From IMG/VR virus record IMGVR_UViG_3300005573_000154, positions 1 to 41,236 of that record: 41,236 nucleotides of DNA; one strand, 5' to 3'. Below the pieces are notes generated by a model that had not been told where the DNA came from, ran no database searches, and was given only the letters and a program-made list of their open reading frames with translations. Both the position numbers and the translations under genes were made by a program. This document shows, piece after piece, positions 6,053 through 37,543 of this stretch (positions within the stretch are counted from its first letter, which is position 1; each line of letters opens with the position of its first letter).

Positions 6053-6142
6053 AGCCCCTTCTTTTTTTATTTTTTAGGTTTACACGTGTAGCTTTGCTTC
6101 TAGTGTATGGGTTTATGAGTAATTGAATATGTCCTAGGGGGG

Positions 6143-6289
6143 CTTAAAGAATTAAAGAAAAGCATAGAGATAAGGGAGCTTTAAGTATCAAAGTGACGGA
6201 TAGAATAAGCCGATAACAATATGGGGCTTTAAAAATTAAAGTAACGGATAGAATTGGGCTTATTGATGATGGGGCTTAAAGCATTAAAG
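6143..6289. repeat. Cluster 3 of palindromic CTTTAA-N3-TTAAAG sites (4 copies)
   Basis: Copies start at 6143, 6179, 6227 and 6275 (spacings 36, 48, 48). Confidence 0.9.
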
Positions 6290-6343
6290 TAACATGAGAG
6301 ATGAGCCATCTAGGGTAATACTCCTAAGGCTTATGTCATGTAT

Positions 6344-6362
6344 GGTTTATATGGTGCTTATG
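6344..6362 (+). promoter_or_regulatory. Conserved viral promoter GGTTTATATGGTGCTTATG
   Basis: TATA box plus conserved downstream element, about 45 nt before the ATG at 6390. Near-identical copies at 7496 and 8613. Confidence 0.75.
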
Positions 6363-6389
6363 CGCTATACCTATTGAGGTGAGGCGGGT

Positions 6390-6968
6390 ATGGTGGAGGA
6401 GTGGGATGAAAAAGTTAGGGAGGCGGCTAAGGCAATATTGGCGCATAGAAACGAGATTGAGGAGCTGATACGGATTTACAGGGATTTGCCTATTGTGTAT
6501 GTGTGTCCGTTTTGCGGCTATATCAGTAGGGAGCCGATGAATAGGGAGATAAAGGCGGAAGTGTATTATCGTGGTTGGCCATATGAAGATGAGTGGATTA
6601 CGGAGGTTATTGGTTTCTGTTTTTGTTCTAGGTGTGGAGCGACTCCGGAGAATTGCAAATATTTCTTTGGGTATGTTAAGGATGGTGAGAAGGTGTTGCA
6701 GATAAATAGCGATGACTTGGATAAGGTGAGGGCTAGGAGCCTTAAGGTTATGACGAGGGAGTATAAGGCGGCTGTCGAGAGGATAAAAGCGATACTAGCC
6801 GATGAATTGAATCGCATACGGGAGAGTGCTGACGAGATAGTTTATTGTGCATCTTCCGGAGAATGTTATTGTGTTGAGGAGATGCCTGAGGATGTAGGGA
6901 GGCTGGTGATGACACTTTACTGCCTAATCAAAGATCCGCCTGAAATGGTTGATGAGGAGGTGATTTGA
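6390..6968 (+). CDS. Zn-finger protein
   Basis: CPFC and CSRC pairs; GAGGTGA RBS. Confidence 0.8.
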   Translation: MVEEWDEKVREAAKAILAHRNEIEELIRIYRDLPIVYVCPFCGYISREPMNREIKAEVYYRGWPYEDEWITEVIGFCFCSRCGATPENCKYFFGYVKDGEKVLQINSDDLDKVRARSLKVMTREYKAAVERIKAILADELNRIRESADEIVYCASSGECYCVEEMPEDVGRLVMTLYCLIKDPPEMVDEEVI

Positions 6969-6969
6969 T

Positions 6970-7323
6970 ATGGCCGGGTTCATTAATTTAACACCACATA
7001 AGGTAACCATTTATTCTAGGGATGGCAAAAAGATAATAGCAGAGATTCCTCCAAGCGGGCTAGTCGCAAGGGTTACGGTAACCTCTAGGATTGTAGGCGA
7101 GATAGCAGGGATTCCGGTCAGGAAAACGGAATATGGGGAGATAGAGAATTTGCCTGATCCGATGCCTGACACGTATTACATCGTCAGCACGGTGGTGTTG
7201 ATTGCGTTGAAGGAAAAAGGAATCAATAGGCCTGACGTTATTTCGCCGGACACCAACCCGGATTCCGTTATAAGGGATTCAGAAGGAAGGGTTATAGGGG
7301 TCAGGTTCTTCCAGACCCTATAA
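6970..7323 (+). CDS. Small NLTPH-motif protein; candidate Crn4-like ring nuclease / anti-CRISPR
   Basis: NLTPH...IPPSG.VARV...LP.P....YIVS...R.D...P....RD.EGR.IG pattern. The CDS is secure; the Crn4 assignment is from memory of the family motif and is unverified. Confidence 0.55.
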   Translation: MAGFINLTPHKVTIYSRDGKKIIAEIPPSGLVARVTVTSRIVGEIAGIPVRKTEYGEIENLPDPMPDTYYIVSTVVLIALKEKGINRPDVISPDTNPDSVIRDSEGRVIGVRFFQTL

Positions 7324-7495
7324 AACCCCCCACTTTTTTCCTGTTTTTGGTTCTGTTTTTTATCTCTTGAAGTAGTGGTTAGGCCATTTATCTCTGTAAC
7401 TACACGTGTAATTCCATCTTTAGGGTATGAGCCCATAGACGAGCCGACATAGACGAGCTATTTCCGGTATTACTCTCGAGGTTTGTGGTGCATAT

Positions 7496-7514
7496 GGTTT
7501 ATATGGCGCTTATG
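7496..7514 (+). promoter_or_regulatory. Conserved viral promoter GGTTTATATGGCGCTTATG
   Basis: One mismatch to the 6344 copy; upstream of the ATG at 7543. Confidence 0.75.
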
Positions 7515-7542
7515 CACAGTATCTGTCGAGGTGGATAGGAGT

Positions 7543-8076
7543 ATGGTCGAGGTTGGAAAGGTTGGGAGGTTTAGCGTCCGCATGCATGACTTCATGCAGT
7601 TTAGCATATGTCTTGATGACGTGGTGTATGACCTTAGTGGGAGTATGGCGATGGATCTGATGATGTTGCTGAGGAGCGTTGATTATGTAACCGTCGAGAA
7701 AAGGCGTGGCAGGCTTATCGTAACATGTGATGGCCTAAGGACGCTGTATATCGAGGATGAGGAGAGCCGCCCGGGATACCGTGTTCTGGCGATTGCGAGG
7801 GTTGTGGGTAATGATGGCGTGAACTATTTTGTCGCATTCTCAGACCCGATGGCGGATGAATACGTGCATTACCATGAATGGGTTGATAGGAACATGAATA
7901 GCCAAGGATACTTGTATGACGATATTGCGGAGTTTATCTATGTTAATGAGTGGGATGCAAGGCCGGAGATCATAGACGAGTGGATTAAGGTGTTTAGCGA
8001 TCCGAGAATCCTTGAACACTTCCCCGAGCTTAGCTTTATTGTAAAGAGGCTTGAGGAGGTGAGGAAGCATGCCTGA
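7543..8076 (+). CDS. Hypothetical protein
   Basis: Start moved to ATG 7543, downstream of the promoter and GAGGTGG RBS. Confidence 0.75.
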   Translation: MVEVGKVGRFSVRMHDFMQFSICLDDVVYDLSGSMAMDLMMLLRSVDYVTVEKRRGRLIVTCDGLRTLYIEDEESRPGYRVLAIARVVGNDGVNYFVAFSDPMADEYVHYHEWVDRNMNSQGYLYDDIAEFIYVNEWDARPEIIDEWIKVFSDPRILEHFPELSFIVKRLEEVRKHA

Positions 8077-8521
8077 GGTTGTTGGTAGATGTTGGGTCTG
8101 GAGGGACGAGGAAAACAAAATGGAGTATGCGATAACCATTGAGGGCTTTGATTCGCACAATGGTATCATAACCAAGCTGAGGCTTGAGAGGTTCTATAGG
8201 CCGCTTGGATTTTGTTTTAAGAATAAGTGGGGGCATGTTTGGATCGTTGAGTTCAATAAGGTTGGGCCGAAGGGGAAGCTGAGGGTAAAATGTATTGAGA
8301 GGGGCTATGAGTGGAACGGGACTTACGTTAAAACCAGGTATTCGGTGAGCATTGAGACGGATTTCATAGAGCCTCCTTGGTTCGTTAAGTTGGACGAGCT
8401 TGAAAAGGAGATCGGCTACTGTGATGTGGATTATGGGTTGCAGACGATAATCACCCATATAAAAGACCTGTTCATGATACACTTCAAGATCCCCGAAGAG
8501 CTACCGGAAAAAATCGGCTAG
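8069..8521 (+). CDS. Hypothetical protein
   Basis: Overlaps the upstream stop; GAGGTGA RBS; T-tract downstream. Confidence 0.75.
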   Translation: MPEVVGRCWVWRDEENKMEYAITIEGFDSHNGIITKLRLERFYRPLGFCFKNKWGHVWIVEFNKVGPKGKLRVKCIERGYEWNGTYVKTRYSVSIETDFIEPPWFVKLDELEKEIGYCDVDYGLQTIITHIKDLFMIHFKIPEELPEKIG

Positions 8522-8612
8522 AAACCCCCTCTCCTTCTTTTTTCATCCTAGCCTACACATGTAGAAAAGACGAGCCAATAACGGTATGACCGTTTTTGTG
8601 TTGGGTGTATAA

Positions 8613-8631
8613 GGTTTATATGGTGCTTATG
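8613..8631 (+). promoter_or_regulatory. Conserved viral promoter GGTTTATATGGTGCTTATG
   Basis: Identical to the 6344 copy. Confidence 0.75.
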
Positions 8632-8656
8632 TGTTCTCATTATCGAGGTGGTTGAG

Positions 8657-8911
8657 ATGAAAGAGGTTAAGTTGGGTGATAAGATCAGCATCTTCGAGCC
8701 GGTAACCGTGATAAGGATTCGTAAGGAGGCTCTGGAGCGCTTGAATAGGTTTTCAAGGGATGTAAGGAACATGGTGTTGGATGAGGCTGTAAAGGCTACT
8801 TTGGAGACTGATCATCCATATGATGTTACCCTTGAAGACGTTATAAGGGCGGAGGCCAAGGTCTATTCGAAGATTAAGGTTAAGGTTAATTCGAGCTGGA
8901 GGTGGTGGTAG
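8657..8911 (+). CDS. Small hypothetical protein (possible RHH-like)
   Basis: ATG 8657 after GAGGTGG; beta-strand then helix-helix pattern (TVIRIRKEALERL). Confidence 0.7.
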   Translation: MKEVKLGDKISIFEPVTVIRIRKEALERLNRFSRDVRNMVLDEAVKATLETDHPYDVTLEDVIRAEAKVYSKIKVKVNSSWRWW

Positions 8912-8914
8912 GAT

Positions 8915-9139
8915 ATGTCAAACGGAAGGGGTAAAATTACGTGTCATTATTGCGGTGCAAAGTGGTATCGCAGGGAACTAAAAATTATGGCTGACACCGA
9001 CGCCGATGAATACGGTGTCTATGTAGTGTATGAATATGTTTGCCCAGCATGTTCAGAGCCGATCTACGACAGACGTTTAAAACCGCTTCGTGGATATGTG
9101 GCACCAAGTTTTGACGAACCATTAAGGTGGGAAGATTGA
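8915..9139 (+). CDS. Zn-ribbon protein
   Basis: CHYC and CPAC pairs. Confidence 0.75.
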   Translation: MSNGRGKITCHYCGAKWYRRELKIMADTDADEYGVYVVYEYVCPACSEPIYDRRLKPLRGYVAPSFDEPLRWED

Positions 9140-9184
9140 GAAACCATTTAGTCAAATTGATTTGACCCATAGGGGGGTGATTTA

Positions 9185-9361
9185 ATGGGAGAGGATGAGT
9201 GGGATAATATTGTGATTGGAGGGTGGAGGGTAATTACTGCTTGGGATATAAGTCTTGCTGTAGTAAAGGTGCAGGAGCTGGAGAAGAGGGTTAAGAAGCT
9301 GGAGGAGGATGTGGCGAGAATATCCAAGATGCTGGACGATATTGTTAAAAAGATAGCCTAG
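9185..9361 (+). CDS. Small coiled-coil protein (58 aa, not in ORF track)
   Basis: GGGGTGA RBS. Translates to MGEDEWDNIVIGGWRVITAWDISLAVVKVQELEKRVKKLEEDVARISKMLDDIVKKIA. Confidence 0.7.
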   Translation: MGEDEWDNIVIGGWRVITAWDISLAVVKVQELEKRVKKLEEDVARISKMLDDIVKKIA

Positions 9362-9376
9362 GTGGGGGTGGTTGGG

Positions 9377-9658
9377 ATGAAGGATGGGGAGGAGCTTGTT
9401 AATGAGCTTGTGGAGGAGGGGGAGAGGGCCGTGAGTTGCAAGTGCCCATACTGCGGCAGGATGCTGGATCATCTTGAGATGATCACGGAGGAGGAGTGGG
9501 CTAGGGACTTCAGGGCCACAGGCGTCGGGCTGGAGCGGAGATACCTGAGGACGGTTGATTGGTATTTCTGTTGCCCATACTGCGGCGCATTATTAACCGA
9601 TTGCGAGAACATCGCCAAGGCCATCCTCCAAGGGACTTGGAACTGGGAGGGGGATTGA
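9377..9658 (+). CDS. Zn-ribbon protein
   Basis: Two CPYCG motifs; start placed at ATG 9377. Confidence 0.75.
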   Translation: MKDGEELVNELVEEGERAVSCKCPYCGRMLDHLEMITEEEWARDFRATGVGLERRYLRTVDWYFCCPYCGALLTDCENIAKAILQGTWNWEGD

Positions 9659-9961
9659 GTGATGAGTGAGGACGTAATTAAGGATGTGGTTTCGATTTAT
9701 AGGGAGGTTCCGGTTGAATGCCTTATTGAGGCGTTGCATGCTAGCTGGGACGAGATAGACGAGGATCTAAAAGCGGTCATGAGAGCCTACAGCATCCCGG
9801 AGGAGTTGCTGTTACATATCAGGGAGTCAATGAGGCAGTATATTGTCAAGGAGCTGAGGGAAAGGGGGTTGCCGGAGGAGGAGTGGATGGTTGAGCCACT
9901 TTTAAAGCTGTTCATCCGCCTATCCAAGGTAATGCTATTAGATGATCTACGGGGGAGGTGA
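9659..9961 (+). CDS. Hypothetical helical protein
   Basis: Tightly packed in the operon; codon usage like neighbours. Confidence 0.7.
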   Translation: MMSEDVIKDVVSIYREVPVECLIEALHASWDEIDEDLKAVMRAYSIPEELLLHIRESMRQYIVKELRERGLPEEEWMVEPLLKLFIRLSKVMLLDDLRGR

Positions 9962-9965
9962 TGGG

Positions 9966-10145
9966 ATGAGGGGGTTGGAGTTCATGTTATGGGATGGGAT
10001 GGACTCAAATGCGTATGGGTGGGTCTGGGATGGGATGGATATAAATGCGTATGGATGGGTTTCTGTATTTGTTTATAGACCGCAGAGTTCTTTTGAGAGG
10101 ATCATATGGGAGGATATGAGGAGGCGTTACCGGAGGAGGAAGTGA
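9966..10145 (+). CDS. Small protein with a 12-aa tandem duplication
   Basis: GGAGGTGA RBS; WDGMDSNAYGWV / WDGMDINAYGWV (36-bp repeat at 9990 and 10026). Confidence 0.6.
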   Translation: MRGLEFMLWDGMDSNAYGWVWDGMDINAYGWVSVFVYRPQSSFERIIWEDMRRRYRRRK

Positions 10146-10149
10146 AGGG

Positions 10150-10452
10150 ATGAGGAGGAAAAAGGAGTCATCCTTGAGGATGGAGAGGCCGCCATTTCTT
10201 TGGCGACTTCAATACTATATTCATTGTCATCCACGCTTATCTTACACCACCTTTATCTGGCTTTTCCAACCCGATCCGGCGTGGCGCAATGGAATCATTG
10301 ATATAATACGGGATCCGGATCTCAGCCTAGGGGAAAAAATTAAGCTGTTTATATTGAATTTGATGGAGGTCATACCGATATTCAGTGGCCTTGAGTGGTG
10401 GCTGTTCTACCTGAAGTTCTGGAAAAGTGTGAGAAAGGGGGAGATACCATGA
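10150..10452 (+). CDS. Hypothetical protein, possibly membrane-associated
   Basis: Aromatic/hydrophobic C-terminal half; in operon. Confidence 0.6.
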   Translation: MRRKKESSLRMERPPFLWRLQYYIHCHPRLSYTTFIWLFQPDPAWRNGIIDIIRDPDLSLGEKIKLFILNLMEVIPIFSGLEWWLFYLKFWKSVRKGEIP

Positions 10453-10465
10453 TGAGGAGGGGGAG

Positions 10466-10912: not shown

Positions 10913-11028
10913 GGGCCTTGAGGAGGGATTTTGATGTTGAGTGGGATACACGTGATCATGATACGTGGGATATGATCTGGTTTTTCGATCAGTCCAAAAA
11001 GGGAAAGAAGAGGAGGAAGAAGCGGTAG

Positions 11029-11241: not shown

Positions 11242-11274
11242 GTCTATTGTTGTGCACTCCTAGACATAAATCTT

Positions 11275-11400: not shown

Positions 11401-11493
11401 ATGATTAAATGAATGTGCAAGGTGTTTATAAATTTTCTCTTTACGAAAAATTTTTATGAGGGCTTATTATTTATTATTGCGAGGTGGGGTGGT

Positions 11494-11793
11494 GTGCCCG
11501 GTAGTAGTTTACTTGATGCGGTTTTGAACCGTGAGCGGATTAGGATTATTCGCTTGCTTGTAAGGAAAAAGATGTATCCTTTGCAGATTTCGAAGAAGTT
11601 GAATCTCAGCCATTCAGATGTTGCGTATCATCTTTCAGTTCTGCATGATGCCGGTATTGTTAAGCGTGAAGTTGGCAGGACTGGCGAGGGTAGGCTTGCG
11701 TATTTTTATGACATTGATCGGCCTAGGCTTAAGCACATATTGTATGAAGTCCAGGCAATTATAAACGGCATTCTTGACGAGCTTGGGGAGTAG
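11494..11793 (+). CDS. ArsR-like winged-HTH regulator
   Basis: NRERIRIIRLL...ISKKLNLSHSDVAYHLSVLHDAGIV; GTG start after GAGGTGG. Confidence 0.85.
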   Translation: MPGSSLLDAVLNRERIRIIRLLVRKKMYPLQISKKLNLSHSDVAYHLSVLHDAGIVKREVGRTGEGRLAYFYDIDRPRLKHILYEVQAIINGILDELGE

Positions 11794-11808
11794 TGAGGTG
11801 ATGAGTGA

Positions 11809-12141: not shown

Positions 12142-12157
12142 TGCGGGGTGAAAAATA

Positions 12158-15096: not shown

Positions 15097-15456
15097 CTAT
15101 TCTTCCTTCATGCCGTCCATGATGAAGTTCGTTATCGCCAGCCTGATGTATTCGGATCTGTTCCTGATTCCTTTCTTTTGCATGTCCATCTTCATTAGCG
15201 CTAGCAATCCTTTTGGGATCTTTAGGCTGACGAATACCATGTTCGTGTCATCGTCATCGAATGCGAACTTTTTGACCGGGTTGTTGTCATTGGATTTTCC
15301 GCCATCCAAGATTGATAGCAACTTCATGTGTTCTTTCAAGCCTCTCTGGATTATGAATCGCAGGGCGGTATTGCGGTATCGGTAGAGCTTCATCCGCACC
15401 ATTTTATCAACTATTTGGACTATCGGCTCTGGGAGGTGTAGTGTTACTATTTGCAT
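15097..15456 (-). CDS. Tandem ribbon-helix-helix (CopG/MetJ-like) regulator
   Basis: Two RHH units (IVTLHLPEPIVQIVDKMV...YRNTALR; VSLKIPKGLLALM...NRSEYIRLAI). TAATG overlap with the upstream gene. Confidence 0.85.
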   Translation of the reverse strand: MQIVTLHLPEPIVQIVDKMVRMKLYRYRNTALRFIIQRGLKEHMKLLSILDGGKSNDNNPVKKFAFDDDDTNMVFVSLKIPKGLLALMKMDMQKKGIRNRSEYIRLAITNFIMDGMKEE

Positions 15457-15656
15457 TACTCCTTCACCTCCTCGACGCTCACACGTATAGTCCATCCTAT
15501 GACTTGGTCGCCGTAGCAGTCATTGCTCCAGAATGTCTCGTGCATTCCCTTGATCATGTCTAATGCTTCTTGAATTGTGTCACATTTCTTTATCCTGACG
15601 CTTCCATCCTCGCCGTCCAAGAATACGTCAAACTTCAATACCTTGATCTCGCCCAT
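15456..15656 (-). CDS. Small hypothetical protein
   Basis: Start at MGEIKV; stop overlaps the RHH start codon. Confidence 0.6.
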   Translation of the reverse strand: MGEIKVLKFDVFLDGEDGSVRIKKCDTIQEALDMIKGMHETFWSNDCYGDQVIGWTIRVSVEEVKE

Positions 15657-15801
15657 AGTCCCACGTGATTGTGATGCATCAAGTGTGATATATAGATGTC
15701 TTCCGGGTATTTGACATGGTATTAGCATGGTGTATTACACGTGTATGTGTTATGCGCTATGTTTATATGGTGTTTGGGTTAATTATGGATTGTGAGGGGA
15801 T

Positions 15802-15987
15802 ATGGCTCGGGTTAAGCTGGTGCATGTAAGGATTGAGGAGGATGTGTATCGCAAGATATGGGCTATTGTGGCGGATAGGTATCTGACGCATAGCCGCAAC
15901 TTGTCAGCTATTGTGAATGAGGCTTTGAAGGAGTATATTCGAAAATATGAGAGTAAAGGCGAGAAGAGGCGAAAGAGGAGGACATAA
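15802..15987 (+). CDS. RHH DNA-binding protein
   Basis: VHVRIEEDVYRKI...LSAIVNEALKEYI. Confidence 0.85.
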   Translation: MARVKLVHVRIEEDVYRKIWAIVADRYLTHSRNLSAIVNEALKEYIRKYESKGEKRRKRRT

Positions 15988-18310: not shown

Positions 18311-18331
18311 GAATGGGAAAAAATATGGGGG

Positions 18332-19282: not shown

Positions 19283-19620
19283 GCCTCAATCACCCTATGG
19301 GTATTATGGTTATTGTGCTATTTAAGCAATACGCCAATAAGTGATGGAAGTAATACCCATATGGGCGCCATAATTGTTCAAGGGTCTTGAGGTATGATCA
19401 AGTCCCTATACTTTAGCAGTGCCTCCACACCATACCACCTTATCATCTGATTCACGAATAGCCAAACATCCCTCATGGGAAGCCTTACCCTACCCAACCC
19501 ATCAACCACCTCATGGGATTTATGGTTATTGTGTTATTTAATCATTACCTGTATCGGTGCTAGAACTACACGTGTAATCCCACGCATGAAACAAAAAAAT
19601 AAAGAGGGGGGTTTTAGTTG

Positions 19621-20046
19621 CTAGAGGACTTCGTATAGTTCGGGGGTTATCATCTTGATTAGCTTGTTGGCTAGGAAGGCGTCAAACCATTTCTTGACCG
19701 TCCTGTCATCGGGGCCTCTGACGTTTGCTATCGCCATCAGGATATGCTTGCGGGGGATTTGCTGGCCGGGTATTATCGCTATGTATCCAAGATGCTCCTC
19801 TAGGAACTTCCTAACCTCTGCGAAGACCCTTCCAACCTTGGGCTGGGGGTTGGCCGCATTCAAAAGTTTGTGCGCTTCTTGCGTGTGCTGGGCGATCCAT
19901 ACCTTCATTGCCTGCTCGATCTCATGGCTCAAAACCCCGTGAAATCTGCCGTATTTCTGGAAAGCTACCCGCCTAAACTCCTCTAACACCTTCTTATCCA
20001 CATAGACATATATACCGGCTTTATTGGGAGGAAGCCTCGGCATCAT
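19621..20046 (-). CDS. RHH domain fused to a probable winged-helix domain
   Basis: IYVYVDKKVLEEFRR...LSHEIEQAM; C-terminal DDRTVKKWFDAFLANKLIK. Confidence 0.75.
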   Translation of the reverse strand: MMPRLPPNKAGIYVYVDKKVLEEFRRVAFQKYGRFHGVLSHEIEQAMKVWIAQHTQEAHKLLNAANPQPKVGRVFAEVRKFLEEHLGYIAIIPGQQIPRKHILMAIANVRGPDDRTVKKWFDAFLANKLIKMITPELYEVL

Positions 20047-20468
20047 TGTTCACCTCGGATACTAGTAAACTTTCACGGATACTAGTGCTATATGATACAT
20101 ATATATATACATTTCTATCAAGAAAGTTAGAGTAGAGTTCAAAAAAATTAGAGATAAATAAGGCTTATGCAAAAACCTTATTATCAGAAGGGGTGGCGAA
20201 GCCTTATGGGGCGGGGGCACCCACGCACGCAAAATGCACACATTTTTTTGTGCTGTAACGTAGCCTCAAGCCTCTTATAACTACACGTGTAGTTACTCCC
20301 TATCTTCTTCAACGGCCCTAGCGAAGCTGAAGCCATCCACAGCTTTTGGCCTTAACCTGAACGTTAGCATCAGCCACACGAGGAACCTGACCTTAAGCCT
20401 CTCCAGCCTCTCCCCTATCCGCATCACGCATCAGGCATAATAACGACCAATATATTTCTATTAACGAT

Positions 20469-20652: not shown

Positions 20653-21294
20653 GTGAATATCAAGGAGCTGATAGACAGGTCAATGACAAACAGGGCTAAC
20701 GAGAGGCCCCTTGAATACGCCTTCGCATGGTCTTGCCTAGCGCCGCTCCTACTAGTCCCAGAGAAGCATAGGAGGAGGATCAGGATTCTGGATGTTGGAG
20801 GGGCTGACAGCCTGCTATCTAAAACCCTAGCCAACCTGGGCTTCGACACAACCGTAATAGACATAAACCCCGTAGATCACGGCAAGGCGAAATACATATG
20901 CGCCAACATCCTCACATACGACTTTCCCGAGCAGTCATTCGACATCATAATAGCCATCTCAACGATAGAACACATTGGCCTACAATGCTACGGCCAAGAC
21001 ATACAAGACCCGGACGGAGACATCAAGACGATGGAGAAGATCCACAGGTGGCTGAGAAACGGCGGCCTAGCAATAATAACCCTACCATACGGAAAACCAC
21101 ACCACCCGCCAACCTTCGAACGAACCTATAACAAGGACACCCTCAAAGACAGGATACTCAGACACGGATGGAACATCCTAAGGCTGGAATACACGTGTAA
21201 TAACGGGACATGGAGACAATGCCTAGAACAAGAAGCAAACACACATGATGCCGCAGTCCTAATGCTCCTCCAGAAACACAATGCTTATAAATGA
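20653..21294 (+). CDS. Class I SAM-dependent methyltransferase
   Basis: ILDVGGA, VIDIN, FDIIIAISTIEH and LRNGG motifs. Confidence 0.9.
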   Translation: MNIKELIDRSMTNRANERPLEYAFAWSCLAPLLLVPEKHRRRIRILDVGGADSLLSKTLANLGFDTTVIDINPVDHGKAKYICANILTYDFPEQSFDIIIAISTIEHIGLQCYGQDIQDPDGDIKTMEKIHRWLRNGGLAIITLPYGKPHHPPTFERTYNKDTLKDRILRHGWNILRLEYTCNNGTWRQCLEQEANTHDAAVLMLLQKHNAYK

Positions 21295-23918: not shown

Positions 23919-25007
23919 ATGAACGGGAGACCGGTAGTATATTACATCTACCCAACCACGAAATGGGTCTCCTTCAGGATAATAGCCGAGGAACATATAA
24001 GACAGATACAAAAACAGTTTTACGTCCAGAAGGTTGATGAGACGGCCCTAGCAACAATACTACCGATAGCATCAATATCAGCCAAATCAGTCATATTCCT
24101 CCACCCATACTTCTATCCGATACAGGTCTATGAGAGGAGGCTTTTTTCAAGGATCGGAAAAATAGGCAACCTCATAGGGGTAGATGTTGCGGACACGGAT
24201 CATATGACAGAGATAGCCGTAAGGCTAACGGGATACGCAACAGCCATGATAGTCCCATCAAACTTCTCAGGGAAAACATATGTAGAGTCAGGGGTAAAGA
24301 CGCCAGTCCACGTGATTCCACATGGAGTCCACGAGTCATACATTGATGCAGAGCCATCAAAGCCCAACATATTCAAGGCCCTCCACGACTACAAGGCTAT
24401 GACGAAGAAGAAGCTGATGCAGATATGGGTCTTACACAGCTCATACCGCAAGGGCGAAGACCTCGCATACAAGATCTTCAACATACTCGTTAAAGAAAGG
24501 ATGGACGTAGCCCTAGTCGTCAGAAGACCACTAAGCATAGACCTATACGACTCCCCAATAAACCCCGAAAAGCTAACGCCAAAGATAACAATAGGCAAAT
24601 CATACCTCACGGATGAGGAGATAAAGGAGCTGATGGACATATGCGACATCTTCCTCCTAGCAAGCAGGGGAGGAGGCTTCGAACACCCACCCCTACTGGG
24701 AATGGCCAGGGGTGAGATAGTCATAGCGGCCAAGGGAGGAGCATGGGAGGACTACATGCCGGAATGGGGCCTAGTCCAATCACAGAAAAGCGAAACAGTC
24801 CTGCCCGGAAACCCGATACACGACGGCAGGGGAGTAGAAATGATAGCCGACAACGCAGTAGCAAAGATCTACGAAATACTAAACAACATGGACGAATACA
24901 AGGCGAAAATCAAAGAACACGTAGAAAAACACGTAAAACCAAACTTCACATGGGATAAAATAGGCCAAAAGCTCAGAGAGCTGACAGCAAGATATTTACA
25001 CATGTAG
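23919..25007 (+). CDS. GT-B (family 4) glycosyltransferase
   Basis: IVPS, VIPHG, RKGED and SRGGGFEHPPLLGMARG motifs; adjacent to the MCP as in rudiviruses. Confidence 0.9.
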   Translation: MNGRPVVYYIYPTTKWVSFRIIAEEHIRQIQKQFYVQKVDETALATILPIASISAKSVIFLHPYFYPIQVYERRLFSRIGKIGNLIGVDVADTDHMTEIAVRLTGYATAMIVPSNFSGKTYVESGVKTPVHVIPHGVHESYIDAEPSKPNIFKALHDYKAMTKKKLMQIWVLHSSYRKGEDLAYKIFNILVKERMDVALVVRRPLSIDLYDSPINPEKLTPKITIGKSYLTDEEIKELMDICDIFLLASRGGGFEHPPLLGMARGEIVIAAKGGAWEDYMPEWGLVQSQKSETVLPGNPIHDGRGVEMIADNAVAKIYEILNNMDEYKAKIKEHVEKHVKPNFTWDKIGQKLRELTARYLHM

Positions 25008-26918: not shown

Positions 26919-29900
26919 ACGATGAACCATTCCAGCTAACCCCAGAGGAAATAGAGGCCATAAGCAAGGCGGTAGCAGACGCAATAGCCCAAAACATACA
27001 AACCATCCAAAACACGATAACAAACAACCTACACGTGTATGAAATAATACCCGAAGACAAAATAGAAGAACTAATTGACCTAGACCTAATAGCATCATCA
27101 GTTCATGGCGTAACCGACATACTGGGACAGATCTCAGGCTGGTTCCAAAGCGTAATAGACAACGCAAGAAAACTCATAGTAAGCGGAATACAGGGGTTCA
27201 TAAATACATATGTAATGCCAGCGATAAACACCATAAAAGACTGGTTCTCTAAAACAGTTCCAGAAGTTGGAAGGGCCTTCGGCGACCTCGTAGGAATAAT
27301 ATCGGACAAGATCACGGCCCCATTAAGATCTGTAGCAAACTTCTTCACAGTAGATATACCAAACTACTTTAGAAAAGTAACCGACTTCTTTACAAAGGAT
27401 ATACCCAGCTTCTTCTCAAAGGTAGTAGATTTCTTCACGAGAGACCTACCCGGATACTTCAGCAAGGTAGCCGACTTCTTCACCAGAGAACTACCAAGCC
27501 GATTCAGCACAGTAATAGACTTCTTCACAAAGACGCTACCGCAACACTTCGGGTCAGTAATAGACTTCTTCACAAAAACACTCCCACAACACTTCGGCAT
27601 GGTAGCCGACTTCTTCACAAAGACAATGCCCCAATACTTTGGAACAGTAGTTAACTTTTTCACCAAAACCCTGCCAGACAACTTCAACATAGTAATAAAC
27701 TTCTTCACCAAAACAATTCCACAATACTTCGGCCTCGTAGCCGACTTTTTCACAAAGACAGTCCCACAATATTTTGGCATGGTAGCAGACTTCTTTACCA
27801 AGACAATTCCACAATACTTCGGCATGGTAACTGACTTCTTCACCAACACGGTGCCAAAATACTTTGGACTATTAGCTGACTTCTTTACCAAAACAGTCCC
27901 ACAATACTTTGGAATGGTGGATGATTTCTTCACTAAAACGGTTCCACAATACTTTGGGCTAGTCGTTGATTTCTTTACCAAGACAGTGCCACAATTCTTC
28001 AGCATGGTAATGGATTTCTTCACCAAAACAGTTCCACAATATTTTACCCTCGTAGCAGACTTCTTCACTAAGACGGTTCCGCAATATTTTGGAATGGTAG
28101 CCGACTTCTTTACTAAGATGGTTCCACAATATTTTGGCATGGTGGCGGACTTCTTCACTAAGACAATTCCACAATATTTTGGAATGGTAGCCGACTTCTT
28201 CACCAAAGCAGTTCCACAATACTTTGGAATGGTAGGCGCATTCTTCACCGAAACGTTGCCAAAATGGATAGAGGGAATGAGAAAAGGGGTTACAGACTTC
28301 ATAGACCTGTTAATGAAACTGCCATCAAGAGCGGCTGACATACTCATGACAGTTGGAAAATTCCTATTCGACACAATTATAGATCCCATGATAAAGGGAA
28401 TCAACACATACATCATAGCACCACTCGCAGGCGGCGTAGAAAGAATGTCAGGAATACTCAACAGCGTTGGAGCCGCATTCCAAGGATTCATGAACGCAAT
28501 CCTAAAATTCCCAGAATGGTTCCAGAGAAACCTAGTCGAACCATTCCTATCAGGACTAGGAAAAATAGGTGAATGGATCTGGAATGCACTGCCAGGATGG
28601 GTGAAAGATGCATTAAACGCAATCACGAACTTCTTCACCAAAGACTTGGTAAACTTCTTCACCAAAACCCTGCCAAGCTTCTTCGACACATTATCCAAAG
28701 GGTTCCAAGACTTCATAAAAGACCCACTTGGATGGTTCCAGAGAAACCTAGTTGAACCGCTAGTTGAAGGCCTAAACGCCATCGGGCAATGGATATGGAA
28801 CGCCCTCCCAGACTGGATGAAGAACGCAATAACAGCAATACAAGACTTCTTCACCAAGACAGTTCCAGAATTCTTCAGCTCAATTGCAAAAGGAATACAG
28901 GAATTCTTCAAAGACCCATTAGGATGGCTCAAAACACACCTAGTCGAACCAATAATCCAAGGATTCAATGCCCTGGGACAATGGATTTGGAACGCATTAC
29001 CGGATTGGCTCAAAGAAGGGCTAGAGGCAATAGGAAACGTATTCAAGGCAATAGCAGAAGGTGTAGTAAACTTCTTCAAAGACCCACTGAGAACAATCAT
29101 GAAAGGATTCGAAGCATTATGGAGCGGAATACAATGGCTGGGACAGAAAATCTGGGAAGGCCTACAATGGCTAGGCGGAATAATATTCAAGGGGCTGGTA
29201 ACCGCAGGAGAATGGCTATGGAACGCAATTAAGGGAGGGGTAGAATGGTTCATAAAGGCGCTAACAGACTTCGGGACAACAATCGTCAACACGATAACAG
29301 GCGCAGTAGTAGGGGGGCTAAAGGCAATAGGGGAATCGCTCATAAAAATGACCGTTGACTTCGTGGAATGGCTACTCGGAGCATCACAGAAATGCGCAAC
29401 ACATGTGGGCCCAGCAATAACCGACCTAGCCGTCGCATTAGTTAAGCCATTCGGAGTTATAGTTCCAACACAATTAGGTGCACCACTAGTAGCACTAGTT
29501 GACGAAGTCAAGCTCGCCAAGAACATCTCACAGTCCATAACATCCCTTGGCAAACTAATCGTGCTATGGGGTGGAACCATCGCAACCAGCCAAGCCCTCG
29601 CAACAGGAGCATGGGCGATACTGCACGGCATCGCAACGCCGCTGGACAAGGTGAGGATAGTAACACCATTCAAGATAAAGGCTAAGGCAAAAGGCAAGGG
29701 CAAGTTTCATCCGGCTGGAGTTGGCGCTGAGGGAGGAGCAGAGGGAGGCGCTGAGGCAGGAATATCTGTCCCACTAACGATAAACCTAGGACTATTCATA
29801 AGGCATATTGCCAGCGAGATAAGGAAACACGCCGACACAATAGGAAGATCACTTGCATATGGATTCGGCATATGGATAACCCAGCCGATGGTCAGGCTCG

Positions 29901-33178: not shown

Positions 33179-33190
33179 GGGTGACAAAAA

Positions 33191-33514
33191 ATGAGCAAAT
33201 GGTCATTAACCTATAAAGGGATTGAGCCAGTCTTCCCAGAGGAATGGAACACCATAATAGACGCCCTAGACTACTTGGACAAAAAGGTGGTAGGCGGGCT
33301 TGCAACATTCATGGGGGACGGAGCGACAATAACCTTCAGCATAGGACACGGCATAGGGGCAAAACCGGTAACAGCAATGGTTGTAAAAGGTGCATCAGGG
33401 CTACCTGACATAGACTATATAACCGTTGACGAATCCTCGATAAACGTGACGTTCAAGACACCGCCAGCAGACGGCGCAAACGTGGCCATATGGTGGCTCG
33501 CAGTAAAACCGTGA
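33191..33514 (+). CDS. Small structural/fibre-associated protein
   Basis: EEWNTIIDAL, then beta-rich GDG...HGIGAKP...VTF.TPP. Confidence 0.7.
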   Translation: MSKWSLTYKGIEPVFPEEWNTIIDALDYLDKKVVGGLATFMGDGATITFSIGHGIGAKPVTAMVVKGASGLPDIDYITVDESSINVTFKTPPADGANVAIWWLAVKP

Positions 33515-33519
33515 TCCCA

Positions 33520-34137
33520 TCAAACATTCCTATCAATTTCACGCATGGCAACCTCGATAACCTTCAGCGTATCAATGACCAGATTATGATCCTTGGTTAG
33601 CACGAAGTCGCCGAAAGCAACCTTACGCATCATCCCAGCCCTAGTCTCAGCCATAGCAATCCAATACTCGACATTAGACAAAGTCCTCCCAGTCTTAGCC
33701 TTAAAAAGCTCATAAAGGTGCTTCAGAAGATCTAGGGACTTACACGTGTAATCAACCGGCAAATTAGTATCCTGAGACAAGACATAATCCCCATCACTAA
33801 CATACCTCATCTGGCCGACATAGCCCTCAAGATCCGAGATAAGGCTATTGGCATAGTCGTCCCCGATCTTGGATGAAACGGCCTTAAACAGGTCTATCAT
33901 ATTCCTGCACGCATCAACCTTGGTATTATTATCCTCGGCCACTATCACGTCCCATATGGCCACAAGCTCCGGGGTAAATGAATAGACCCGCCTAACCTCA
34001 ACCCCGGCAAGAGTATATCTAACCTTGGCCTCAACATCATTAAACTTGAAAGAATCAACAACACCCATACTCGCCCCCATCCCGGTAAAGCCCTCGTCCA
34101 AGAACTTATCCATAACCTCTACAACATAGTTCGCCAT
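33520..34137 (-). CDS. Hypothetical protein with internal repeat
   Basis: MRYVSDGDYVLSQDTNL / MRKVAFGDFVLTKDHNL; start placed at MANY. Confidence 0.7.
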   Translation of the reverse strand: MANYVVEVMDKFLDEGFTGMGASMGVVDSFKFNDVEAKVRYTLAGVEVRRVYSFTPELVAIWDVIVAEDNNTKVDACRNMIDLFKAVSSKIGDDYANSLISDLEGYVGQMRYVSDGDYVLSQDTNLPVDYTCKSLDLLKHLYELFKAKTGRTLSNVEYWIAMAETRAGMMRKVAFGDFVLTKDHNLVIDTLKVIEVAMREIDRNV

Positions 34138-34191
34138 CACCAAAACAGCCATCAACACATATATATAAACCATCTAACACACCTAATCACG

Positions 34192-34773
34192 ATGTCCCAC
34201 ACAAGCCATGAAAAGCCCGACACAGCAAAACTGAGTGGATGGGTTGAGGCCATAGTCAGGGACAAGGACGGAAACATAAAATACCATATAAACACGCTTG
34301 AAGAAGGCGAAAAAGAAGAGGAAGAAGAAGGAGACTGCGCCATCTCAATATTCCCAGCATCACAATCAGTGACATTCTACTGGAGGAGAAACGTAATAAC
34401 AAACGTAGGATTTGCGGCGGTCATACGGCTAATATTCGAAGGCTTAACAGAGACGAAATTCGGCTACCTAGCAATCGGGACTGGAACAACAGTGGAAGCC
34501 GTAACGGATACAAAGCTGGAGAATGAGATAGCGAGAAAAAGCGCCACAACCACGCAATCAACCCTAAACATAACAGGAGACCTAGCAATAGTTGAAGCAA
34601 CATTCTCAAAGGATGACGGCCTATCAGGGACACACAATGTCTCAGAGGTAGGAATATTCAACGCCCCGACAGGAGGCATACTACTAGCACGAAAAGTATT
34701 CGCACCAATACCAATAAACTGGGACATAGGAGACACCATAACCATGAGATACTTCATAAACATAACAAGATAA
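34192..34773 (+). CDS. Tail-fibre/baseplate-anchor-like beta protein (paralog of 37055-37543)
   Basis: NVITNVG...FGYLAIGTGTT...DTKLENEIARK...SEVGIFNAPTGGILLARKVF. Confidence 0.75.
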   Translation: MSHTSHEKPDTAKLSGWVEAIVRDKDGNIKYHINTLEEGEKEEEEEGDCAISIFPASQSVTFYWRRNVITNVGFAAVIRLIFEGLTETKFGYLAIGTGTTVEAVTDTKLENEIARKSATTTQSTLNITGDLAIVEATFSKDDGLSGTHNVSEVGIFNAPTGGILLARKVFAPIPINWDIGDTITMRYFINITR

Positions 34774-34783
34774 AGGTGAGATA

Positions 34784-35152
34784 ATGCCGGTTCGAATAAG
34801 GGAGAAAAAACGATTCAAGGGAACGGCAACCCCAACGGAACTAAACCGTGAGACAACAGTAATAGACCTGCCAAACCAGGCAGACGACTTCATCCTAGAA
34901 GGTCAAATAAGCCTCCAGAACATGCAGTCAGGGGATACGGTAATATTAAAGTTCTACATAGCAGTAGATGGTGAAAACCAAGTGTTAAGCGACAATGTAA
35001 TGTTCATGGGCGCACAGGCCATACCAGTCGTAAGAATACCATCAATAACCCTAGCATACGACTCAAAGCCGAAGCTAACCCTAACACAGACAACTGGAGT
35101 CATCAGATCATATCCATACAGTATAATAATCCAGGTAATGGAGGTGATCTGA
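34784..35152 (+). CDS. Beta-sandwich structural protein
   Basis: Similar to the C-terminal domain of 38273-39031 (G.I.L..M..GDTV...Y;  L.QTTG..RSY.Y). Confidence 0.7.
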   Translation: MPVRIREKKRFKGTATPTELNRETTVIDLPNQADDFILEGQISLQNMQSGDTVILKFYIAVDGENQVLSDNVMFMGAQAIPVVRIPSITLAYDSKPKLTLTQTTGVIRSYPYSIIIQVMEVI

Positions 35153-35155
35153 GAC

Positions 35156-36805
35156 ATGAGCCTATGGCATCCCATGAGGCTTAGATGGACGGTAAAGCTA
35201 TCAGAACTAGAAATAGACACAAGCAAGGACTGGAGAGGCTATGTAATAAAAAACCTCGGAGCACCAACAGACCCATACGACTCAGCAAGAAAAATAGACC
35301 TAGACACCCTAGAAATACCCTGGAATAGAGTAACAGATAAGCCGGAAAAATATCCACCAGAATCACACGGGTCAAGTCATGGAGCAGATCCAAATTATCC
35401 AACCTCGGGAGCAAGCGATCCAATAACCGGGTGGATCTATCCAAGCCACATAGGCCCAAGATCAACGGACTATACCACGCCGGTGCGCATGTGGTTCTGG
35501 ACAAGGGACTACACCGGACAAAACACGCTAAACAACATACTATCACCAATGGACTCTGGAGCCGGTAAACTTGGAGACAGCAGTTACCCCTGGGGAGAAA
35601 CATGGACTAGATCACTCTACACGGATAACATAAGGCCGGTAGCAAGCGGCAGTGGAGGAAACATCGGCGCATCAGACAATTACTACTACTCAGCATACAT
35701 ATACAACATCTACACGAGATACATTGACTGCGGAACACCAATATCAGGAGTGCCATCAAGCGAAATACATGCCGACTATATATACAACAAGTCAGGAGAC
35801 GGATACGGATACCTCGGATCATCAAGTCAAAGATGGGGCTACGCCTACATCGTAAACCTATACGCCAACTATCTAAACGGCTGGAACCCAGACGCCCATA
35901 GGAGCCGACATGAAAGCGGTGGAGCTGATGCCATAACCGGCTGGATAAGCCCATCATATATAGGGCCGAGATCTGATACCGCATCATCTACAATATTTAG
36001 AACTGATAACATTGCTGGCACTAGCGGAGTTAACCACAAGTTCCGCCCATCACGGGATACGTTTGGATACTTGGGTGATACAAGCTACCGTTGGAACTTC
36101 CTATACACATATTATTCATATATGTGGGAGCTACGTTTCAGGGGAAGCGGGTATGCATACTTCCCAGCCGACACCAATACGGATTGCTATATAGAGCCCA
36201 TGTCGGATGCACGTAGCTTTGTCGGCACATCCAGCTATCGTTTTTACCAAGTTAGAGCAGTTTACATAACCTCTGGGGATCTATGCTTTGAGGATCGGTA
36301 TTGCGCCGTTTGTGGTAAGAAGTTTAAAGTCGGAGACTCCATCACGCTTAAAGTTATAGCCGTAGATGATGATGAATGCAGAATAAGGACGATACCAGTT
36401 CACGTTGAGTGCAACCCCCATAACCCTAACCCAGACCTCCTCAAATTACACGAGGAGATGTTGAAGCCTAACAGGGGTAATCTACCGGAAGAGTTCAGGC
36501 CAAAGGCTAAGCCTTTCGGCAATCCCGAACCCTTAAAAGAGGGAGAATTTGAAGTTGTAAGCGTCACGGTTGAGGATGAAAACACAGCCATGTTCAACGT
36601 AATAATGTGGGATGGGACACCCCTCAGCATACCAGCGCCAACAAATATATCGGATGAAGATCTAAACAAACTAGTCCAAGAATATTACGAAATGAAGAAA
36701 CAATTTGAAAGGGAGCTTGAGGAGAGGAGGAAGAAAGGCCAAGCTAGGTTAAATAGGGACTGGCGTGGCTACAAGGGGAAGATACCAGCCGGAAAACCCT
36801 CATAA
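35156..36805 (+). CDS. Fibre/adhesin-like protein with internal repeats
   Basis: Duplicated DPITGWIYPSHIGPRS / DAITGWISPSYIGPRS; repeated G.LG.SS..W..Y units; HRSRHESGGAD motif; C-terminal CAVC...H..C. Confidence 0.75.
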   Translation: MSLWHPMRLRWTVKLSELEIDTSKDWRGYVIKNLGAPTDPYDSARKIDLDTLEIPWNRVTDKPEKYPPESHGSSHGADPNYPTSGASDPITGWIYPSHIGPRSTDYTTPVRMWFWTRDYTGQNTLNNILSPMDSGAGKLGDSSYPWGETWTRSLYTDNIRPVASGSGGNIGASDNYYYSAYIYNIYTRYIDCGTPISGVPSSEIHADYIYNKSGDGYGYLGSSSQRWGYAYIVNLYANYLNGWNPDAHRSRHESGGADAITGWISPSYIGPRSDTASSTIFRTDNIAGTSGVNHKFRPSRDTFGYLGDTSYRWNFLYTYYSYMWELRFRGSGYAYFPADTNTDCYIEPMSDARSFVGTSSYRFYQVRAVYITSGDLCFEDRYCAVCGKKFKVGDSITLKVIAVDDDECRIRTIPVHVECNPHNPNPDLLKLHEEMLKPNRGNLPEEFRPKAKPFGNPEPLKEGEFEVVSVTVEDENTAMFNVIMWDGTPLSIPAPTNISDEDLNKLVQEYYEMKKQFERELEERRKKGQARLNRDWRGYKGKIPAGKPS

Positions 36806-36847
36806 ACAAGCTTTTATACCAGCAAATACCCATAGCATCAGGGAAGC

Positions 36848-37030
36848 ATGATCTGCCCATTCATAGGGGTATGTAGGTTAAAGGTCTCGATAGAGCACTA
36901 CTCGAATGTATGCTCCAACCTGTCAAAGGACGCATACAAGGGATGCGACGAGTATAAGCGGCTATCCGCAGAGCCGAGAACACCATCAGAATGGGGAAGA
37001 CTGCTAACAATAACACCACCGCCACCATAA
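36848..37030 (+). CDS. Small Cys-rich protein
   Basis: CPFIGVC...C...C. Confidence 0.6.
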   Translation: MICPFIGVCRLKVSIEHYSNVCSNLSKDAYKGCDEYKRLSAEPRTPSEWGRLLTITPPPP

Positions 37031-37054
37031 AAGTGAAACACCCAGTGAACGGAA

Positions 37055-37543
37055 ATGCACGACAAAAGCAGGGTCAAGGGATGGATAGAGGTGATAATAA
37101 CCGACAGACACGGAAACATCAAGTATCACATCGGATCTACACGTGTAAGACAACTATCAAACATCATCACCAACGTGGGGCTGGCCGCACTAGTAAGGCT
37201 CATGGGAAGCGGCCTAACCGAGTCAAAATTCGGCTACATAGCCATAGGAACGGGAACAACCCCGGAATCCGAGACAGACACAGCCCTAGAAAACGAGATA
37301 AAGAGAAAAGCCGCAACCATAAGACAGGTAACAACAACAATAGACGGGGACACATGCCTCTTCGAAGCAATCTTCTCAAGAATAGACGGTCTAACAGGCT
37401 CGCACAACATATCAGAAATAGGCATATTCAACGCCCCGACAGGGGGAATACTACTAGCACGGAGAACCTTCCTACCAGCACCAGTAAACTGGGACGCAGA
37501 AGAACAGGTAACAGCACGATACTGGATACAATTCACACGGTAG
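37055..37543 (+). CDS. Tail-fibre/baseplate-anchor-like protein (paralog of 34192-34773)
   Basis: High identity to 34192-34773 but lacking its acidic insertion. Confidence 0.8.
   Translation: MHDKSRVKGWIEVIITDRHGNIKYHIGSTRVRQLSNIITNVGLAALVRLMGSGLTESKFGYIAIGTGTTPESETDTALENEIKRKAATIRQVTTTIDGDTCLFEAIFSRIDGLTGSHNISEIGIFNAPTGGILLARRTFLPAPVNWDAEEQVTARYWIQFTR

Follow-up and report, generated by a model that had tools for sequence, protein, structure and literature searches.

A recurrent palindromic decamer as a candidate cassette-junction site in a rudivirus-like archaeal virus

The window studied here is the whole of the 41,236-bp IMG/VR record IMGVR_UViG_3300005573_000154, a complete virus record with inverted terminal repeats (ITRs), and the element in question is TACACGTGTA, a perfect 10-bp palindrome (hereafter the decamer) which is present in 11 copies, nine of them internal and one at each record end. 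Open reading frame (ORF) 23490-23867 of the window encodes a SIRV-type major coat protein (PF12193, E=1.3e-18; PDB 6wq0, E=1e-10, and 3j9x, E=4e-8), and by this protein the virus is classed as rudivirus-like and archaeal. Other recognisable genes encode a glycosyltransferase, a class I SAM methyltransferase, a GNAT domain, a class II amidotransferase (GATase) domain, a Nal1-type serine protease, zinc ribbons, an ArsR-type winged helix and several ribbon-helix-helix (RHH) proteins. A first-pass annotation of the sequence had pointed out the nine internal decamers, and each of these was confirmed at its coordinate (Table 1).

Abundance and setting of the decamer

The decamer had been expected, in that annotation, well under once in 41 kb, and k-mer counts against background models agreed with this. 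Dinucleotide shuffles of the window gave an expectation of 0 copies (0/100 shuffles held any), and Markov models of orders 1-4 gave 0.013-0.16 against the 11 observed, an over-representation of roughly 100-1000-fold; no other palindrome in the window genome was as strongly over-represented. The variants listed alongside the exact copies were also present (TACACATGTA at 3081, 8554 and 24997; TACATGTGTA at 147), and to these can be added TACACATGTA at 41081, which is the ITR mate of the TACATGTGTA at 147, and two one-mismatch sites that the annotation did not contain, TACACGTGAA at 10710 and CACACGTGTA at 38183. With up to one mismatch allowed, 18 sites were observed where 0.5 were expected. Five of the seven one-mismatch variants differ only in having the central CG changed to TG or CA, and orthologous decamer sites switch among CG, CA and TG centres between close relatives.

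The hexamer CACGTG at the core of the decamer is itself above expectation (28 in the window against 4-6.5), which is what chance or compositional bias as an explanation has in its favour. A general CACGTG bias was the objection that the first-pass annotation had raised to its own proposal, and it fails: 11 of the 28 cores are flanked by TA on each side, where the TA frequency predicts 0.14, and the hexamer bias therefore cannot account for the decamer. Of similar import, 11 of the 13 ACACGTGT sites extend into the full decamer. As the copies are, in addition, conserved across independent assemblies from several samples, a chance origin is hardly credible and is already refuted by the counts. 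The flanks of the decamer form a weak extended dyad, approximately GAAY-decamer-RTTC and not longer than 18 bp, with the copy at 20282 lying at the centre of an 18-bp perfect palindrome, TAACTACACGTGTAGTTA.

Five of the nine exact internal copies (6081, 7401, 15736, 19567 and 20282) are intergenic in a genome that is 15.4% non-coding (binomial P=0.006), as are the variants at 3081, 8554 and 38183, whereas the copies at 27030, 33741 and 37138 lie within ORFs; the earlier statement that some copies stand between a terminator and the next promoter, and others inside genes, was thus borne out. Promoters and terminators were assigned from sequence only. An oligo-T run is an archaeal termination signal, and the left-arm decamers follow such a run by 5-40 nt, so that each is predicted to stand between the terminator of one unit and the leader or promoter of the next. 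Where the decamer lies upstream of a TATA-like box, the distance between the two is constant for each type of module (86-87, 51 or 16 nt). Six modules from three genomes could be aligned, and these share the order oligo-T run, about 40 nt, GTAAC-decamer-AATT, about 25 nt, GACGAGCC, 6 nt, GACGAGCY, GGTAATAC and promoter. The copy at 15736 separates an operon on the minus strand, encoding a 90-aa protein and a double-RHH protein, from an operon on the plus strand encoding a 61-aa RHH protein (RHH-61), a 135-aa protein and Tas. Given the constant spacing to predicted promoters, a regulatory role for the decamer is likely as well.

Table 1. Decamer copies, their variants and associated features of the window
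Feature	Position	Strand	Remarks
Left inverted terminal repeat	1..392		perfect over 392 bp
Decamer TACACGTGTA, left record end	1..10		sub-terminal in the longer contig, 33 bp inside the fold-back apex
Variant TACATGTGTA in ITR	147..156		within CCTACA-TG-TGTAGG; mate at 41081-41090
Variant TACACATGTA	3081..3090		right after a TATA-like box and just before ORF 3091-3681; same variant in L028 (1440)
Exact copy	6081..6090		5 nt past the oligo-T run behind the GATase gene
Exact copy	7401..7410		conserved leader module; TATA box 87 nt on
Two GACGAGCY boxes	7438..7459	+	leader module after the decamer; kept in six module copies from three genomes
Variant TACACATGTA	8554..8563		exact decamer at the same place in L028 and R29
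126-aa ArsR-type winged-helix protein	11413..11793	+	candidate binder
132-aa protein with two RHH domains	15097..15495	-	candidate binder
Exact copy	15736..15745		divergent promoter region; TATA box 16 nt to the right; TACATGTGTA in R29
61-aa RHH protein (RHH-61)	15802..15987	+	candidate binder
Exact copy	19567..19576		16 nt downstream of the oligo-T terminator of gene 19621-20046 (-); left edge of swapped segment
705-bp segment with 141-aa gene	19577..20281	-	between two decamers
Exact copy	20282..20291		right edge of swapped segment; centre of TAACTACACGTGTAGTTA
Exact copy	21190..21199		within the 3' tail of the ORF for the SAM methyltransferase; TATA-like box of the following gene 84 nt further on; kept in R29 (23800)
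Variant TACACATGTA	24997..25006		overlaps the last glycosyltransferase codons; 10 nt before the TATA-like box of gene 25041-26360
Exact copy	27030..27039		in the 2,088-aa ORF, codons ~40-43; outside the coverage of the relatives
Exact copy	33741..33750		in a 217-aa ORF (- strand); kept in L036
Exact copy	37138..37147		in a 162-aa ORF; kept in L036
Variant CACACGTGTA	38183..38192		divergent intergenic region, genes 37533-38171 (-) and 38240-39031 (+)
Right inverted terminal repeat	40845..41236		mate of 1..392
Decamer, right record end	41227..41236		ITR mate of 1-10; also sub-terminal

Decamers at the edges of exchanged gene units

Relatives of the window virus were reached through homologues of a 117-aa protein (6970-7323) and are long contigs from other samples. 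L028 covers the first 16 kb of a contig of 47.4 kb; R29, composed of L029 and L038, covers 25.2 kb of one of 45.2 kb; L036 supplies 11 kb of right-arm sequence with a nucleotide identity of 94%; and L015 is a 3.9-kb piece with 63% protein identity in a 438-aa protein. Decamers were found at syntenic places in L028 (6081, 7401, 8554 and 15736) and in R29 (the same four, that at 15736 as TACATGTGTA, together with 19567, 20282 and 21190), and also in L036 (33741 and 37138), where conservation is weak evidence at an overall nucleotide identity of 94%; L015 has the same GTAAC-decamer-AATT module. The copies recur in independently assembled genomes from several samples, and at 6081 all three genomes have a conserved upstream flank, unrelated downstream sequence and ten invariant bases between them. 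No decamer, and no palindrome substituting for it, was found in L032 (79% identity in the 117-aa protein) or in L033-L035 (63%), and because these more distant relatives have no copy the decamer appears specific to one clade. Two genes of L032, at 3897-5075 and 9052-9414, code for a C5 DNA methyltransferase (PF00145) and a resolvase of the Hjc type (PF01870); neither enzyme was found in the window.

Synteny breakpoints fell 0-5 nt from a decamer at five window sites. The window and L028 are 93% identical through the last base of 6081-6090 and unrelated beyond it. Compared with R29, an identity of about 90% is lost 3 nt beyond 19567-19576 and regained 5 nt ahead of 20282; between these two copies the 705 bp of the window, with their 141-aa gene, are replaced in R29 by an unrelated 1,917 bp carrying genes for 188- and 197-aa proteins. 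R29 also contains extra single-gene units, separated by decamers at 3105, 3549 and 4293, and a 3.1-kb block inserted about 50 nt to the right of its 7401-type copy, after which homology to the window resumes inside a decamer. Over two comparisons, six block ends lay within 5 nt of a copy, where by a rough estimate about 0.2 would be expected for uniformly placed ends and about 1.5 for ends confined to intergenic sequence.

Relocation was seen for a 575-bp unit (leader, promoter, an ORF of 135/149 aa and oligo-T run), which is 95.5% identical between L028 (7382-7956) and R29 (4293-4868) although the two loci differ. In both genomes TACACGTGTA forms the left edge of the unit and TACATATGTA its right edge. 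The place of the unit in L028 is occupied by one copy only in both R29 (10006) and the window (8554), with identical outer flanks. Such a pattern of empty and filled sites is what would be expected if a unit with one copy recombined with a genomic copy. Across these alignments the decamer is shown as the exact boundary at which units that are self-contained by their predicted leader, promoter, ORF and terminator have been inserted, lost, replaced or relocated, and the breakpoints at five sites and the relocated 575-bp unit give strong support to that part of the earlier interpretation which saw in it recombination sites at the borders of gene cassettes.

We propose, with a probability of about 0.55, that TACACGTGTA is a lineage-specific palindromic cassette-junction site of this rudivirus-like archaeal virus; it looks like a punctuation mark for recombination and regulation rather than a true end sequence. 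A dimeric protein, either viral (RHH or winged-helix) or from the host, would recognise the dyad of the decamer, and bound decamers would be brought together or cut, such that exchange between any two copies could insert, delete or swap the DNA between them. A circular unit with one copy would, on integrating at a genomic copy, give copy-unit-copy, which matches the observed pattern, and the same binding would probably also affect transcription at unit boundaries. The exchange may be a true site-specific recombination or a recombination focused on this short homology. A site-focused process (binding, synapsis or cleavage) is favoured over diffuse homologous recombination because the junctions at 19567/20282 and of the 575-bp unit share only the decamer and a few bases.

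Several observations weigh against a cassette-junction site. Further synteny breaks between the same genomes fall away from any copy; the in-gene copies at 27030, 33741 and 37138 have shown no cassette behaviour so far; and the conserved flanking modules, of up to about 150 bp, could support ordinary homologous recombination at some of the sites. Three to four related genomes were compared, each over part of its length. In the Logan contigs of four runs, in which rare forms would be invisible, position 37138 showed neither a joint nor a contig break. Among about 50 ORFs scanned against Pfam and PHROGs (the 2,088-aa ORF and small ORFs such as 40279-40473 and 40597-40821 stood outside these scans), there was no match to a recombinase of the tyrosine or serine type, a Rep or a protelomerase.

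The decamer might instead be only an operator for a transcription factor, of a repressor or roadblock, stoperator or early-gene regulatory type, with unit boundaries coinciding with it simply as the starts of modules that ordinary homologous recombination shuffles. Its perfect dyad symmetry, the copy in the promoter region shared by two divergent RHH genes, the variants between a TATA box and a gene start (3081) and 10 nt before a TATA box (24997), the distances to the TATA box that are constant within each module type (16, 51 and 86-87 nt), the conserved modules that flank the decamers and the operator-like arrays of the same decamer in unrelated viral contigs would all suit an operator, and precedents exist in the virus-specific regulatory sequences that precede small accessory genes of rudiviruses (PMC11065993) and in the TACAnnTGTA operators of CopY/BlaI-type winged-helix proteins (PMC7253601). 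However, the junctions of the 19567/20282 swap and of the 575-bp unit share the decamer and at most 5 nt, which is too short for repeated chance homologous recombination, three or four copies lie within ORFs at a distance from promoters, and a decamer brackets each telomere. A purely regulatory site is thus a serious but not a favoured explanation.

Among known regulatory sites are the stoperators of cluster A mycobacteriophages, asymmetric 13-mers which follow the direction of transcription and to which the repressor binds as a monomer (PMC9283540, PMC6550527). The decamer resembles them in occurring as many copies of one short site across a viral genome, mostly between genes, and differs in being a symmetric dyad that coincides with recombination junctions and for whose binder there are candidates only. 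The early-gene regulatory sequences of rudiviruses and lipothrixviruses, which are virus-specific and under Aca8-type control, have a promoter-centred consensus of 30-100 bp (PMC11065993); in common with these, small and poorly conserved single genes of the arms share a regulatory sequence, a strong TATA/BRE promoter and a presumed repressor site, whereas the decamer core lies 16-87 nt upstream of the TATA box and occurs also in ORFs and at telomeres. The only lead returned by a literature search on the decamer was the CopY operator, and the CopY/BlaI/MecI winged-helix repressors, which read TACAnnTGTA operators, are bacterial (PMC7253601). The decamer has the same TACA..TGTA dyad geometry and, as a short ACGT-centred palindrome that could be read by one dimer, it also recalls the MetJ box. 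That box, AGACGTCT, is the 8-bp site of a bacterial RHH repressor. Both likenesses serve as leads only, and neither a Penicillinase_R nor a MetJ homologue was found in the window.

For the cassette-junction site that we favour, the nearest functional analogue is, judged by likeness of arrangement, the promoter-early stem-loop (PeSL) of T4-type phages, in which genes are shuffled by recombination between conserved promoter-terminator motifs, and mini-circles can arise when adjacent motifs exchange (PMC2839356, PMC4122927). As with PeSL cassettes, a short conserved motif is repeated between small accessory genes and joins a terminator with a promoter (both predicted from sequence for the decamer), the motif marks the limits of the indels and replacements that distinguish close relatives, and units of a single ORF can move. 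A PeSL combines a stem-loop terminator with a sigma-70 early promoter, whereas the decamer is a loop-less 10-bp perfect palindrome associated with archaeal oligo-T terminators; unlike in PeSL cassettes, its junctions share as little as 10-15 bp, and it also brackets each telomere.

Integrons offer a second comparison, in that the same unit occurs at different positions and a filled site has the unit between two copies where an empty site has one. The attC sites of integrons are imperfect palindromes of 57-141 nt that are used as folded single strands, and integron cassettes lack promoters. In contrast, the decamer is a perfect palindrome of 10 bp with an extended dyad of no more than 18 bp, its units carry their own leader, promoter and terminator and are dispersed rather than gathered in one array, and no IntI-type tyrosine recombinase was found in the Pfam/PHROGs scans of about 50 ORFs. 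Because the defining features of PeSL and integron (stem-loop with sigma-70 promoter, IntI, attC fold) fail, and the units own promoters, this is modular shuffling of a known kind but distinct; what it adds is a junction site that also brackets the telomere, in an archaeal virus.

A bolder proposal, which we regard as rather doubtful, is that the decamer forms the core of a dedicated, protein-mediated site-specific exchange system, integron-like but with a 10-bp dyad as its basis; single-gene cassettes with their own promoters would enter or leave at any copy, and the same machinery would process the telomere. The 66-bp hairpin palindrome at the genome end would then itself be a unit bounded by two copies, and one of the many unannotated viral ORFs would encode the enzyme, a recombinase or nuclease that is new or has escaped recognition. 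Archaeal viruses are rich in unrelated orphan genes, and the routes by which these are exchanged are largely unknown. One recognisable 10-bp site that marks exact exchange points in several independent environmental genomes offers a testable handle on cassette traffic, through which the binder, the formation of circles and the question of whether the accessory units are anti-defence genes can be approached, as can a possible link between cassette traffic and hairpin-telomere processing in the rudivirus lineage.

Genome ends and candidate proteins acting on the decamer

The decamers at the record ends had been described as terminal in the first-pass annotation, and they are so in this record only. 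The JGI contig Ga0207433_10002105 (41,400 bp), which was compared over window positions 1-12287 and 29463-41236 and was identical throughout those parts, continues for 82 bp past the window at each end. At each contig end (1-98 of L005 and 11759-11856 of L008, both pieces of this contig) lies a perfect 98-nt palindrome composed of 6 ITR bases, decamer, 33 bp, axis, 33 bp, decamer and 6 ITR bases. Because the contig ends in this fold-back, the genome runs 33 bp past each supposedly terminal decamer, and the part of the earlier interpretation that took the decamer for a physical terminus did not stand. The ITR, perfect over 392 bp in the window, measures 474 bp in the 41,400-bp contig including the fold-back, and inverted decamers bracket the 66-bp axis palindrome at both contig ends. 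Folded as single-stranded DNA, the 98-nt fold-back has an energy of -60 kcal/mol (z = -18.9).

By de Bruijn graph reasoning, one would expect a 98-nt palindrome as the k=99 assembly product of either a covalently closed hairpin or a head-to-head dimer, the junctions of which would assemble identically; if the ends are hairpins, the full genome would be about 41,302 bp. The outer edge of the decamer is precisely where the window record ends, and the Logan contig from the likely source run, covering 40845-41228, is 8 nt shorter; the stop may reflect a graph branch arising from strains that differ outside the decamer, which would fit what the internal copies show. None of the Logan contigs of four runs that cover 35237-41236 extends past the window end, although contigs cannot reveal rare forms. 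In practical terms, the "terminal" sequence of such a record may be read as an end when, as here, it is an assembly boundary rather than the physical end.

These ends raise the possibility that the decamer is a telomere-processing or replication-initiation site, nicked by a Rep-like protein or serving, as in poxviruses, for resolution, with the internal copies acting as secondary nicks or origins. The hairpin telomeres of poxviruses have resolution signals that flank the concatemer junction. The inverted decamers that flank the 66-bp axis palindrome at both ends, and a record that stops at the outer edge of the decamer while the Logan contig stops 8 nt earlier, would agree with such a site, as would the biology of rudiviruses, which have hairpin ends, nicking by Rep near the terminus and palindromic head-to-head dimers (PMC5062984). 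Like those of Rudiviridae and poxviruses, the window genome would be a linear double-stranded DNA with ITRs, and its end palindrome fits a hairpin or head-to-head dimer; as in poxviruses, a short signal occurs in inverted copies to either side of the axis, a likeness in position only. It differs in that the decamer recurs nine times internally, a feature undescribed for those viruses, and these internal copies follow the boundaries of transcription units and cassettes and no replication feature. In addition, the decamer lies 33 bp off the axis, unlike a protelomerase-type resolution site, which is axis-centred, and homologues of Rep (including the SIRV1 ORF119 type), of protelomerases, the family of which was not hit, and of a clear Holliday-junction resolvase (including the Hjc type) were not found in the window by the Pfam/PHROGs scans, the only nuclease lead being a 101-aa PD-(D/E)XK-like ORF (18332-18637). 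Telomere processing as the primary function of the decamer is therefore improbable.

The palindrome with its CACGTG core could also be the target of a restriction-like endonuclease or a methyltransferase, its spread and the decay of the central CG to TG or CA resulting from cleavage or methylation. The excess of CpG transitions among the variants (5/7), the flipping of orthologous sites among CG, CA and TG, a small Mrr-like nuclease ORF and the C5 DNA methyltransferase of the more distant L032 speak in favour, whereas viruses normally shed restriction sites rather than acquire them, the sole methyltransferase of the window is a generic class I enzyme, with no DNA methyltransferase found there, and L032, which bears the C5 enzyme, has no decamer at all. 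We regard this explanation as very improbable.

Returning to a cassette-junction site recognised by a dimeric protein, three viral proteins are candidate binders, chosen by position only (Table 1). RHH-61 is a candidate only because its promoter carries a decamer. The RHH domains of the 132-aa protein, at residues 8-55 and 84-132, amount to a covalent RHH pseudo-dimer, and the third candidate is the ArsR-type protein. The proposal that the decamer is the site of a dimeric protein linking telomere and transcription is plausible, given the perfect palindrome with its weak extended dyad, the bracketing of the telomere, the divergent promoter of two RHH genes and the fixed distances to predicted TATA boxes. 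Two proteins were tried as enzymes and set aside. The 438-aa end-proximal protein, considered as a tyrosine recombinase or protelomerase, had no PDB profile match, and its Atlas model was poor with weak kinase-like resemblances; the 302-aa ORF, considered as an IS110-like recombinase acting on the decamer, was ruled out on being recognised as Tas, a TIGR-associated Nop-domain protein.

Other features of the genome

ORF 16418-17326 (plus strand, 302 aa) encodes this Tas protein, with profile matches in PDB to TIGR-TasR (9mty, E=6e-25) and TasH (E=2e-15). Its AlphaFold model (pLDDT 91.5) gave the TasH and TasR complexes as top Foldseek matches, and the protein has a small domain at its N terminus and lacks a recognisable nuclease. 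Directly after tas, at 17351-18319, lies a TIGR array of 57 alternating 8-nt repeats (AGCGAGCT / AGTGAGCT) with 9-nt spacers, which at a 34-nt period and about 28 units is unusually long; TIGR-Tas systems with dual-repeat arrays were described by Faure et al. (PMC12045711). Both tas and the array are conserved in the relatives L028 and L039. Of two near-identical 45-kb contigs from different samples, L038 (6667-7553) and L039 (6668-7576), one has tas intact and the other has it broken into three ORFs, which may be due to a frameshift or an assembly error. Targeting of the decamer or of the virus itself by TIGR spacers was considered and rejected: three dual-spacer matches were found at 16/18, against about 1.5 expected, none of them at a decamer, and neither the window nor the compared parts of the relatives contained a significant dual-spacer target. 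The GACGAGCC/GACGAGCT boxes that follow the decamer (7438-7459 and 8569-8576, and in the L028, R29 and L015 modules) closely resemble the TIGR repeats, and the TIGR array itself holds a AACGAGCT variant. These leader boxes may, by their resemblance, be solo repeat-like elements or Tas-related sites.

A scan of IMG/VR viral contigs for decamer-N50-80-decamer returned nine unrelated contigs with operator-like arrays of the identical decamer, among them L026 (7835-7913), L022 (5717-6108), L024 (6347-6902) and L023 (12480-12555). In one example GGTTACACGTGTAACC occurs three times at a spacing of 30-39 bp, giving an operator- or iteron-like look. None of these contigs is related to the window virus, and protein similarity to the window is absent from them. 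Relatives within IMG/VR were not found by a protein-pattern scan, by an ITR-plus-decamer 20-mer or by an 18-mer of the module, a scan of a genome collection with the coat protein found none either, and a JGI metagenome scan recovered only Ga0207433_10002105. No DNA match to the window was found in INPHARED, where the only protein match was the counterpart of the Nal1-type serine protease in Aeropyrum coil-shaped virus. All 22 public runs that contain window sequence are hot-spring or sediment metagenomes, and the names of distant homologues, such as Thermofilum, indicate hyperthermophilic Thermoproteota (as homologue names only, not as a host assignment).

A second dispersed family of non-coding repeats is formed by direct repeats of the GGGGCTTAAAGCATTAAAGTA type at 419-507 (just inside the left ITR boundary), 2591-2703, 2903-2919 (minus strand) and 6143-6291, which thus recur ahead of gene 3091 and again beyond the 6081 decamer. 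Within the 2,088-aa ORF (26912-33178), the product of which is probably a terminal-fibre protein, ACTTCTTCAC occurs 13 times between 27339 and 28857, and the 45-nt spacing of several of these copies implies that the N-terminal part of the protein contains a tandem repeat of 15 residues. The coding strand is purine-rich genome-wide, and the favoured purine differs between the left and right arms: measured on the plus strand in 2-kb windows, GC skew is 0.15-0.37 (G over C) across the left 12 kb and AT skew is 0.2-0.36 (A over T) across the right 20 kb.

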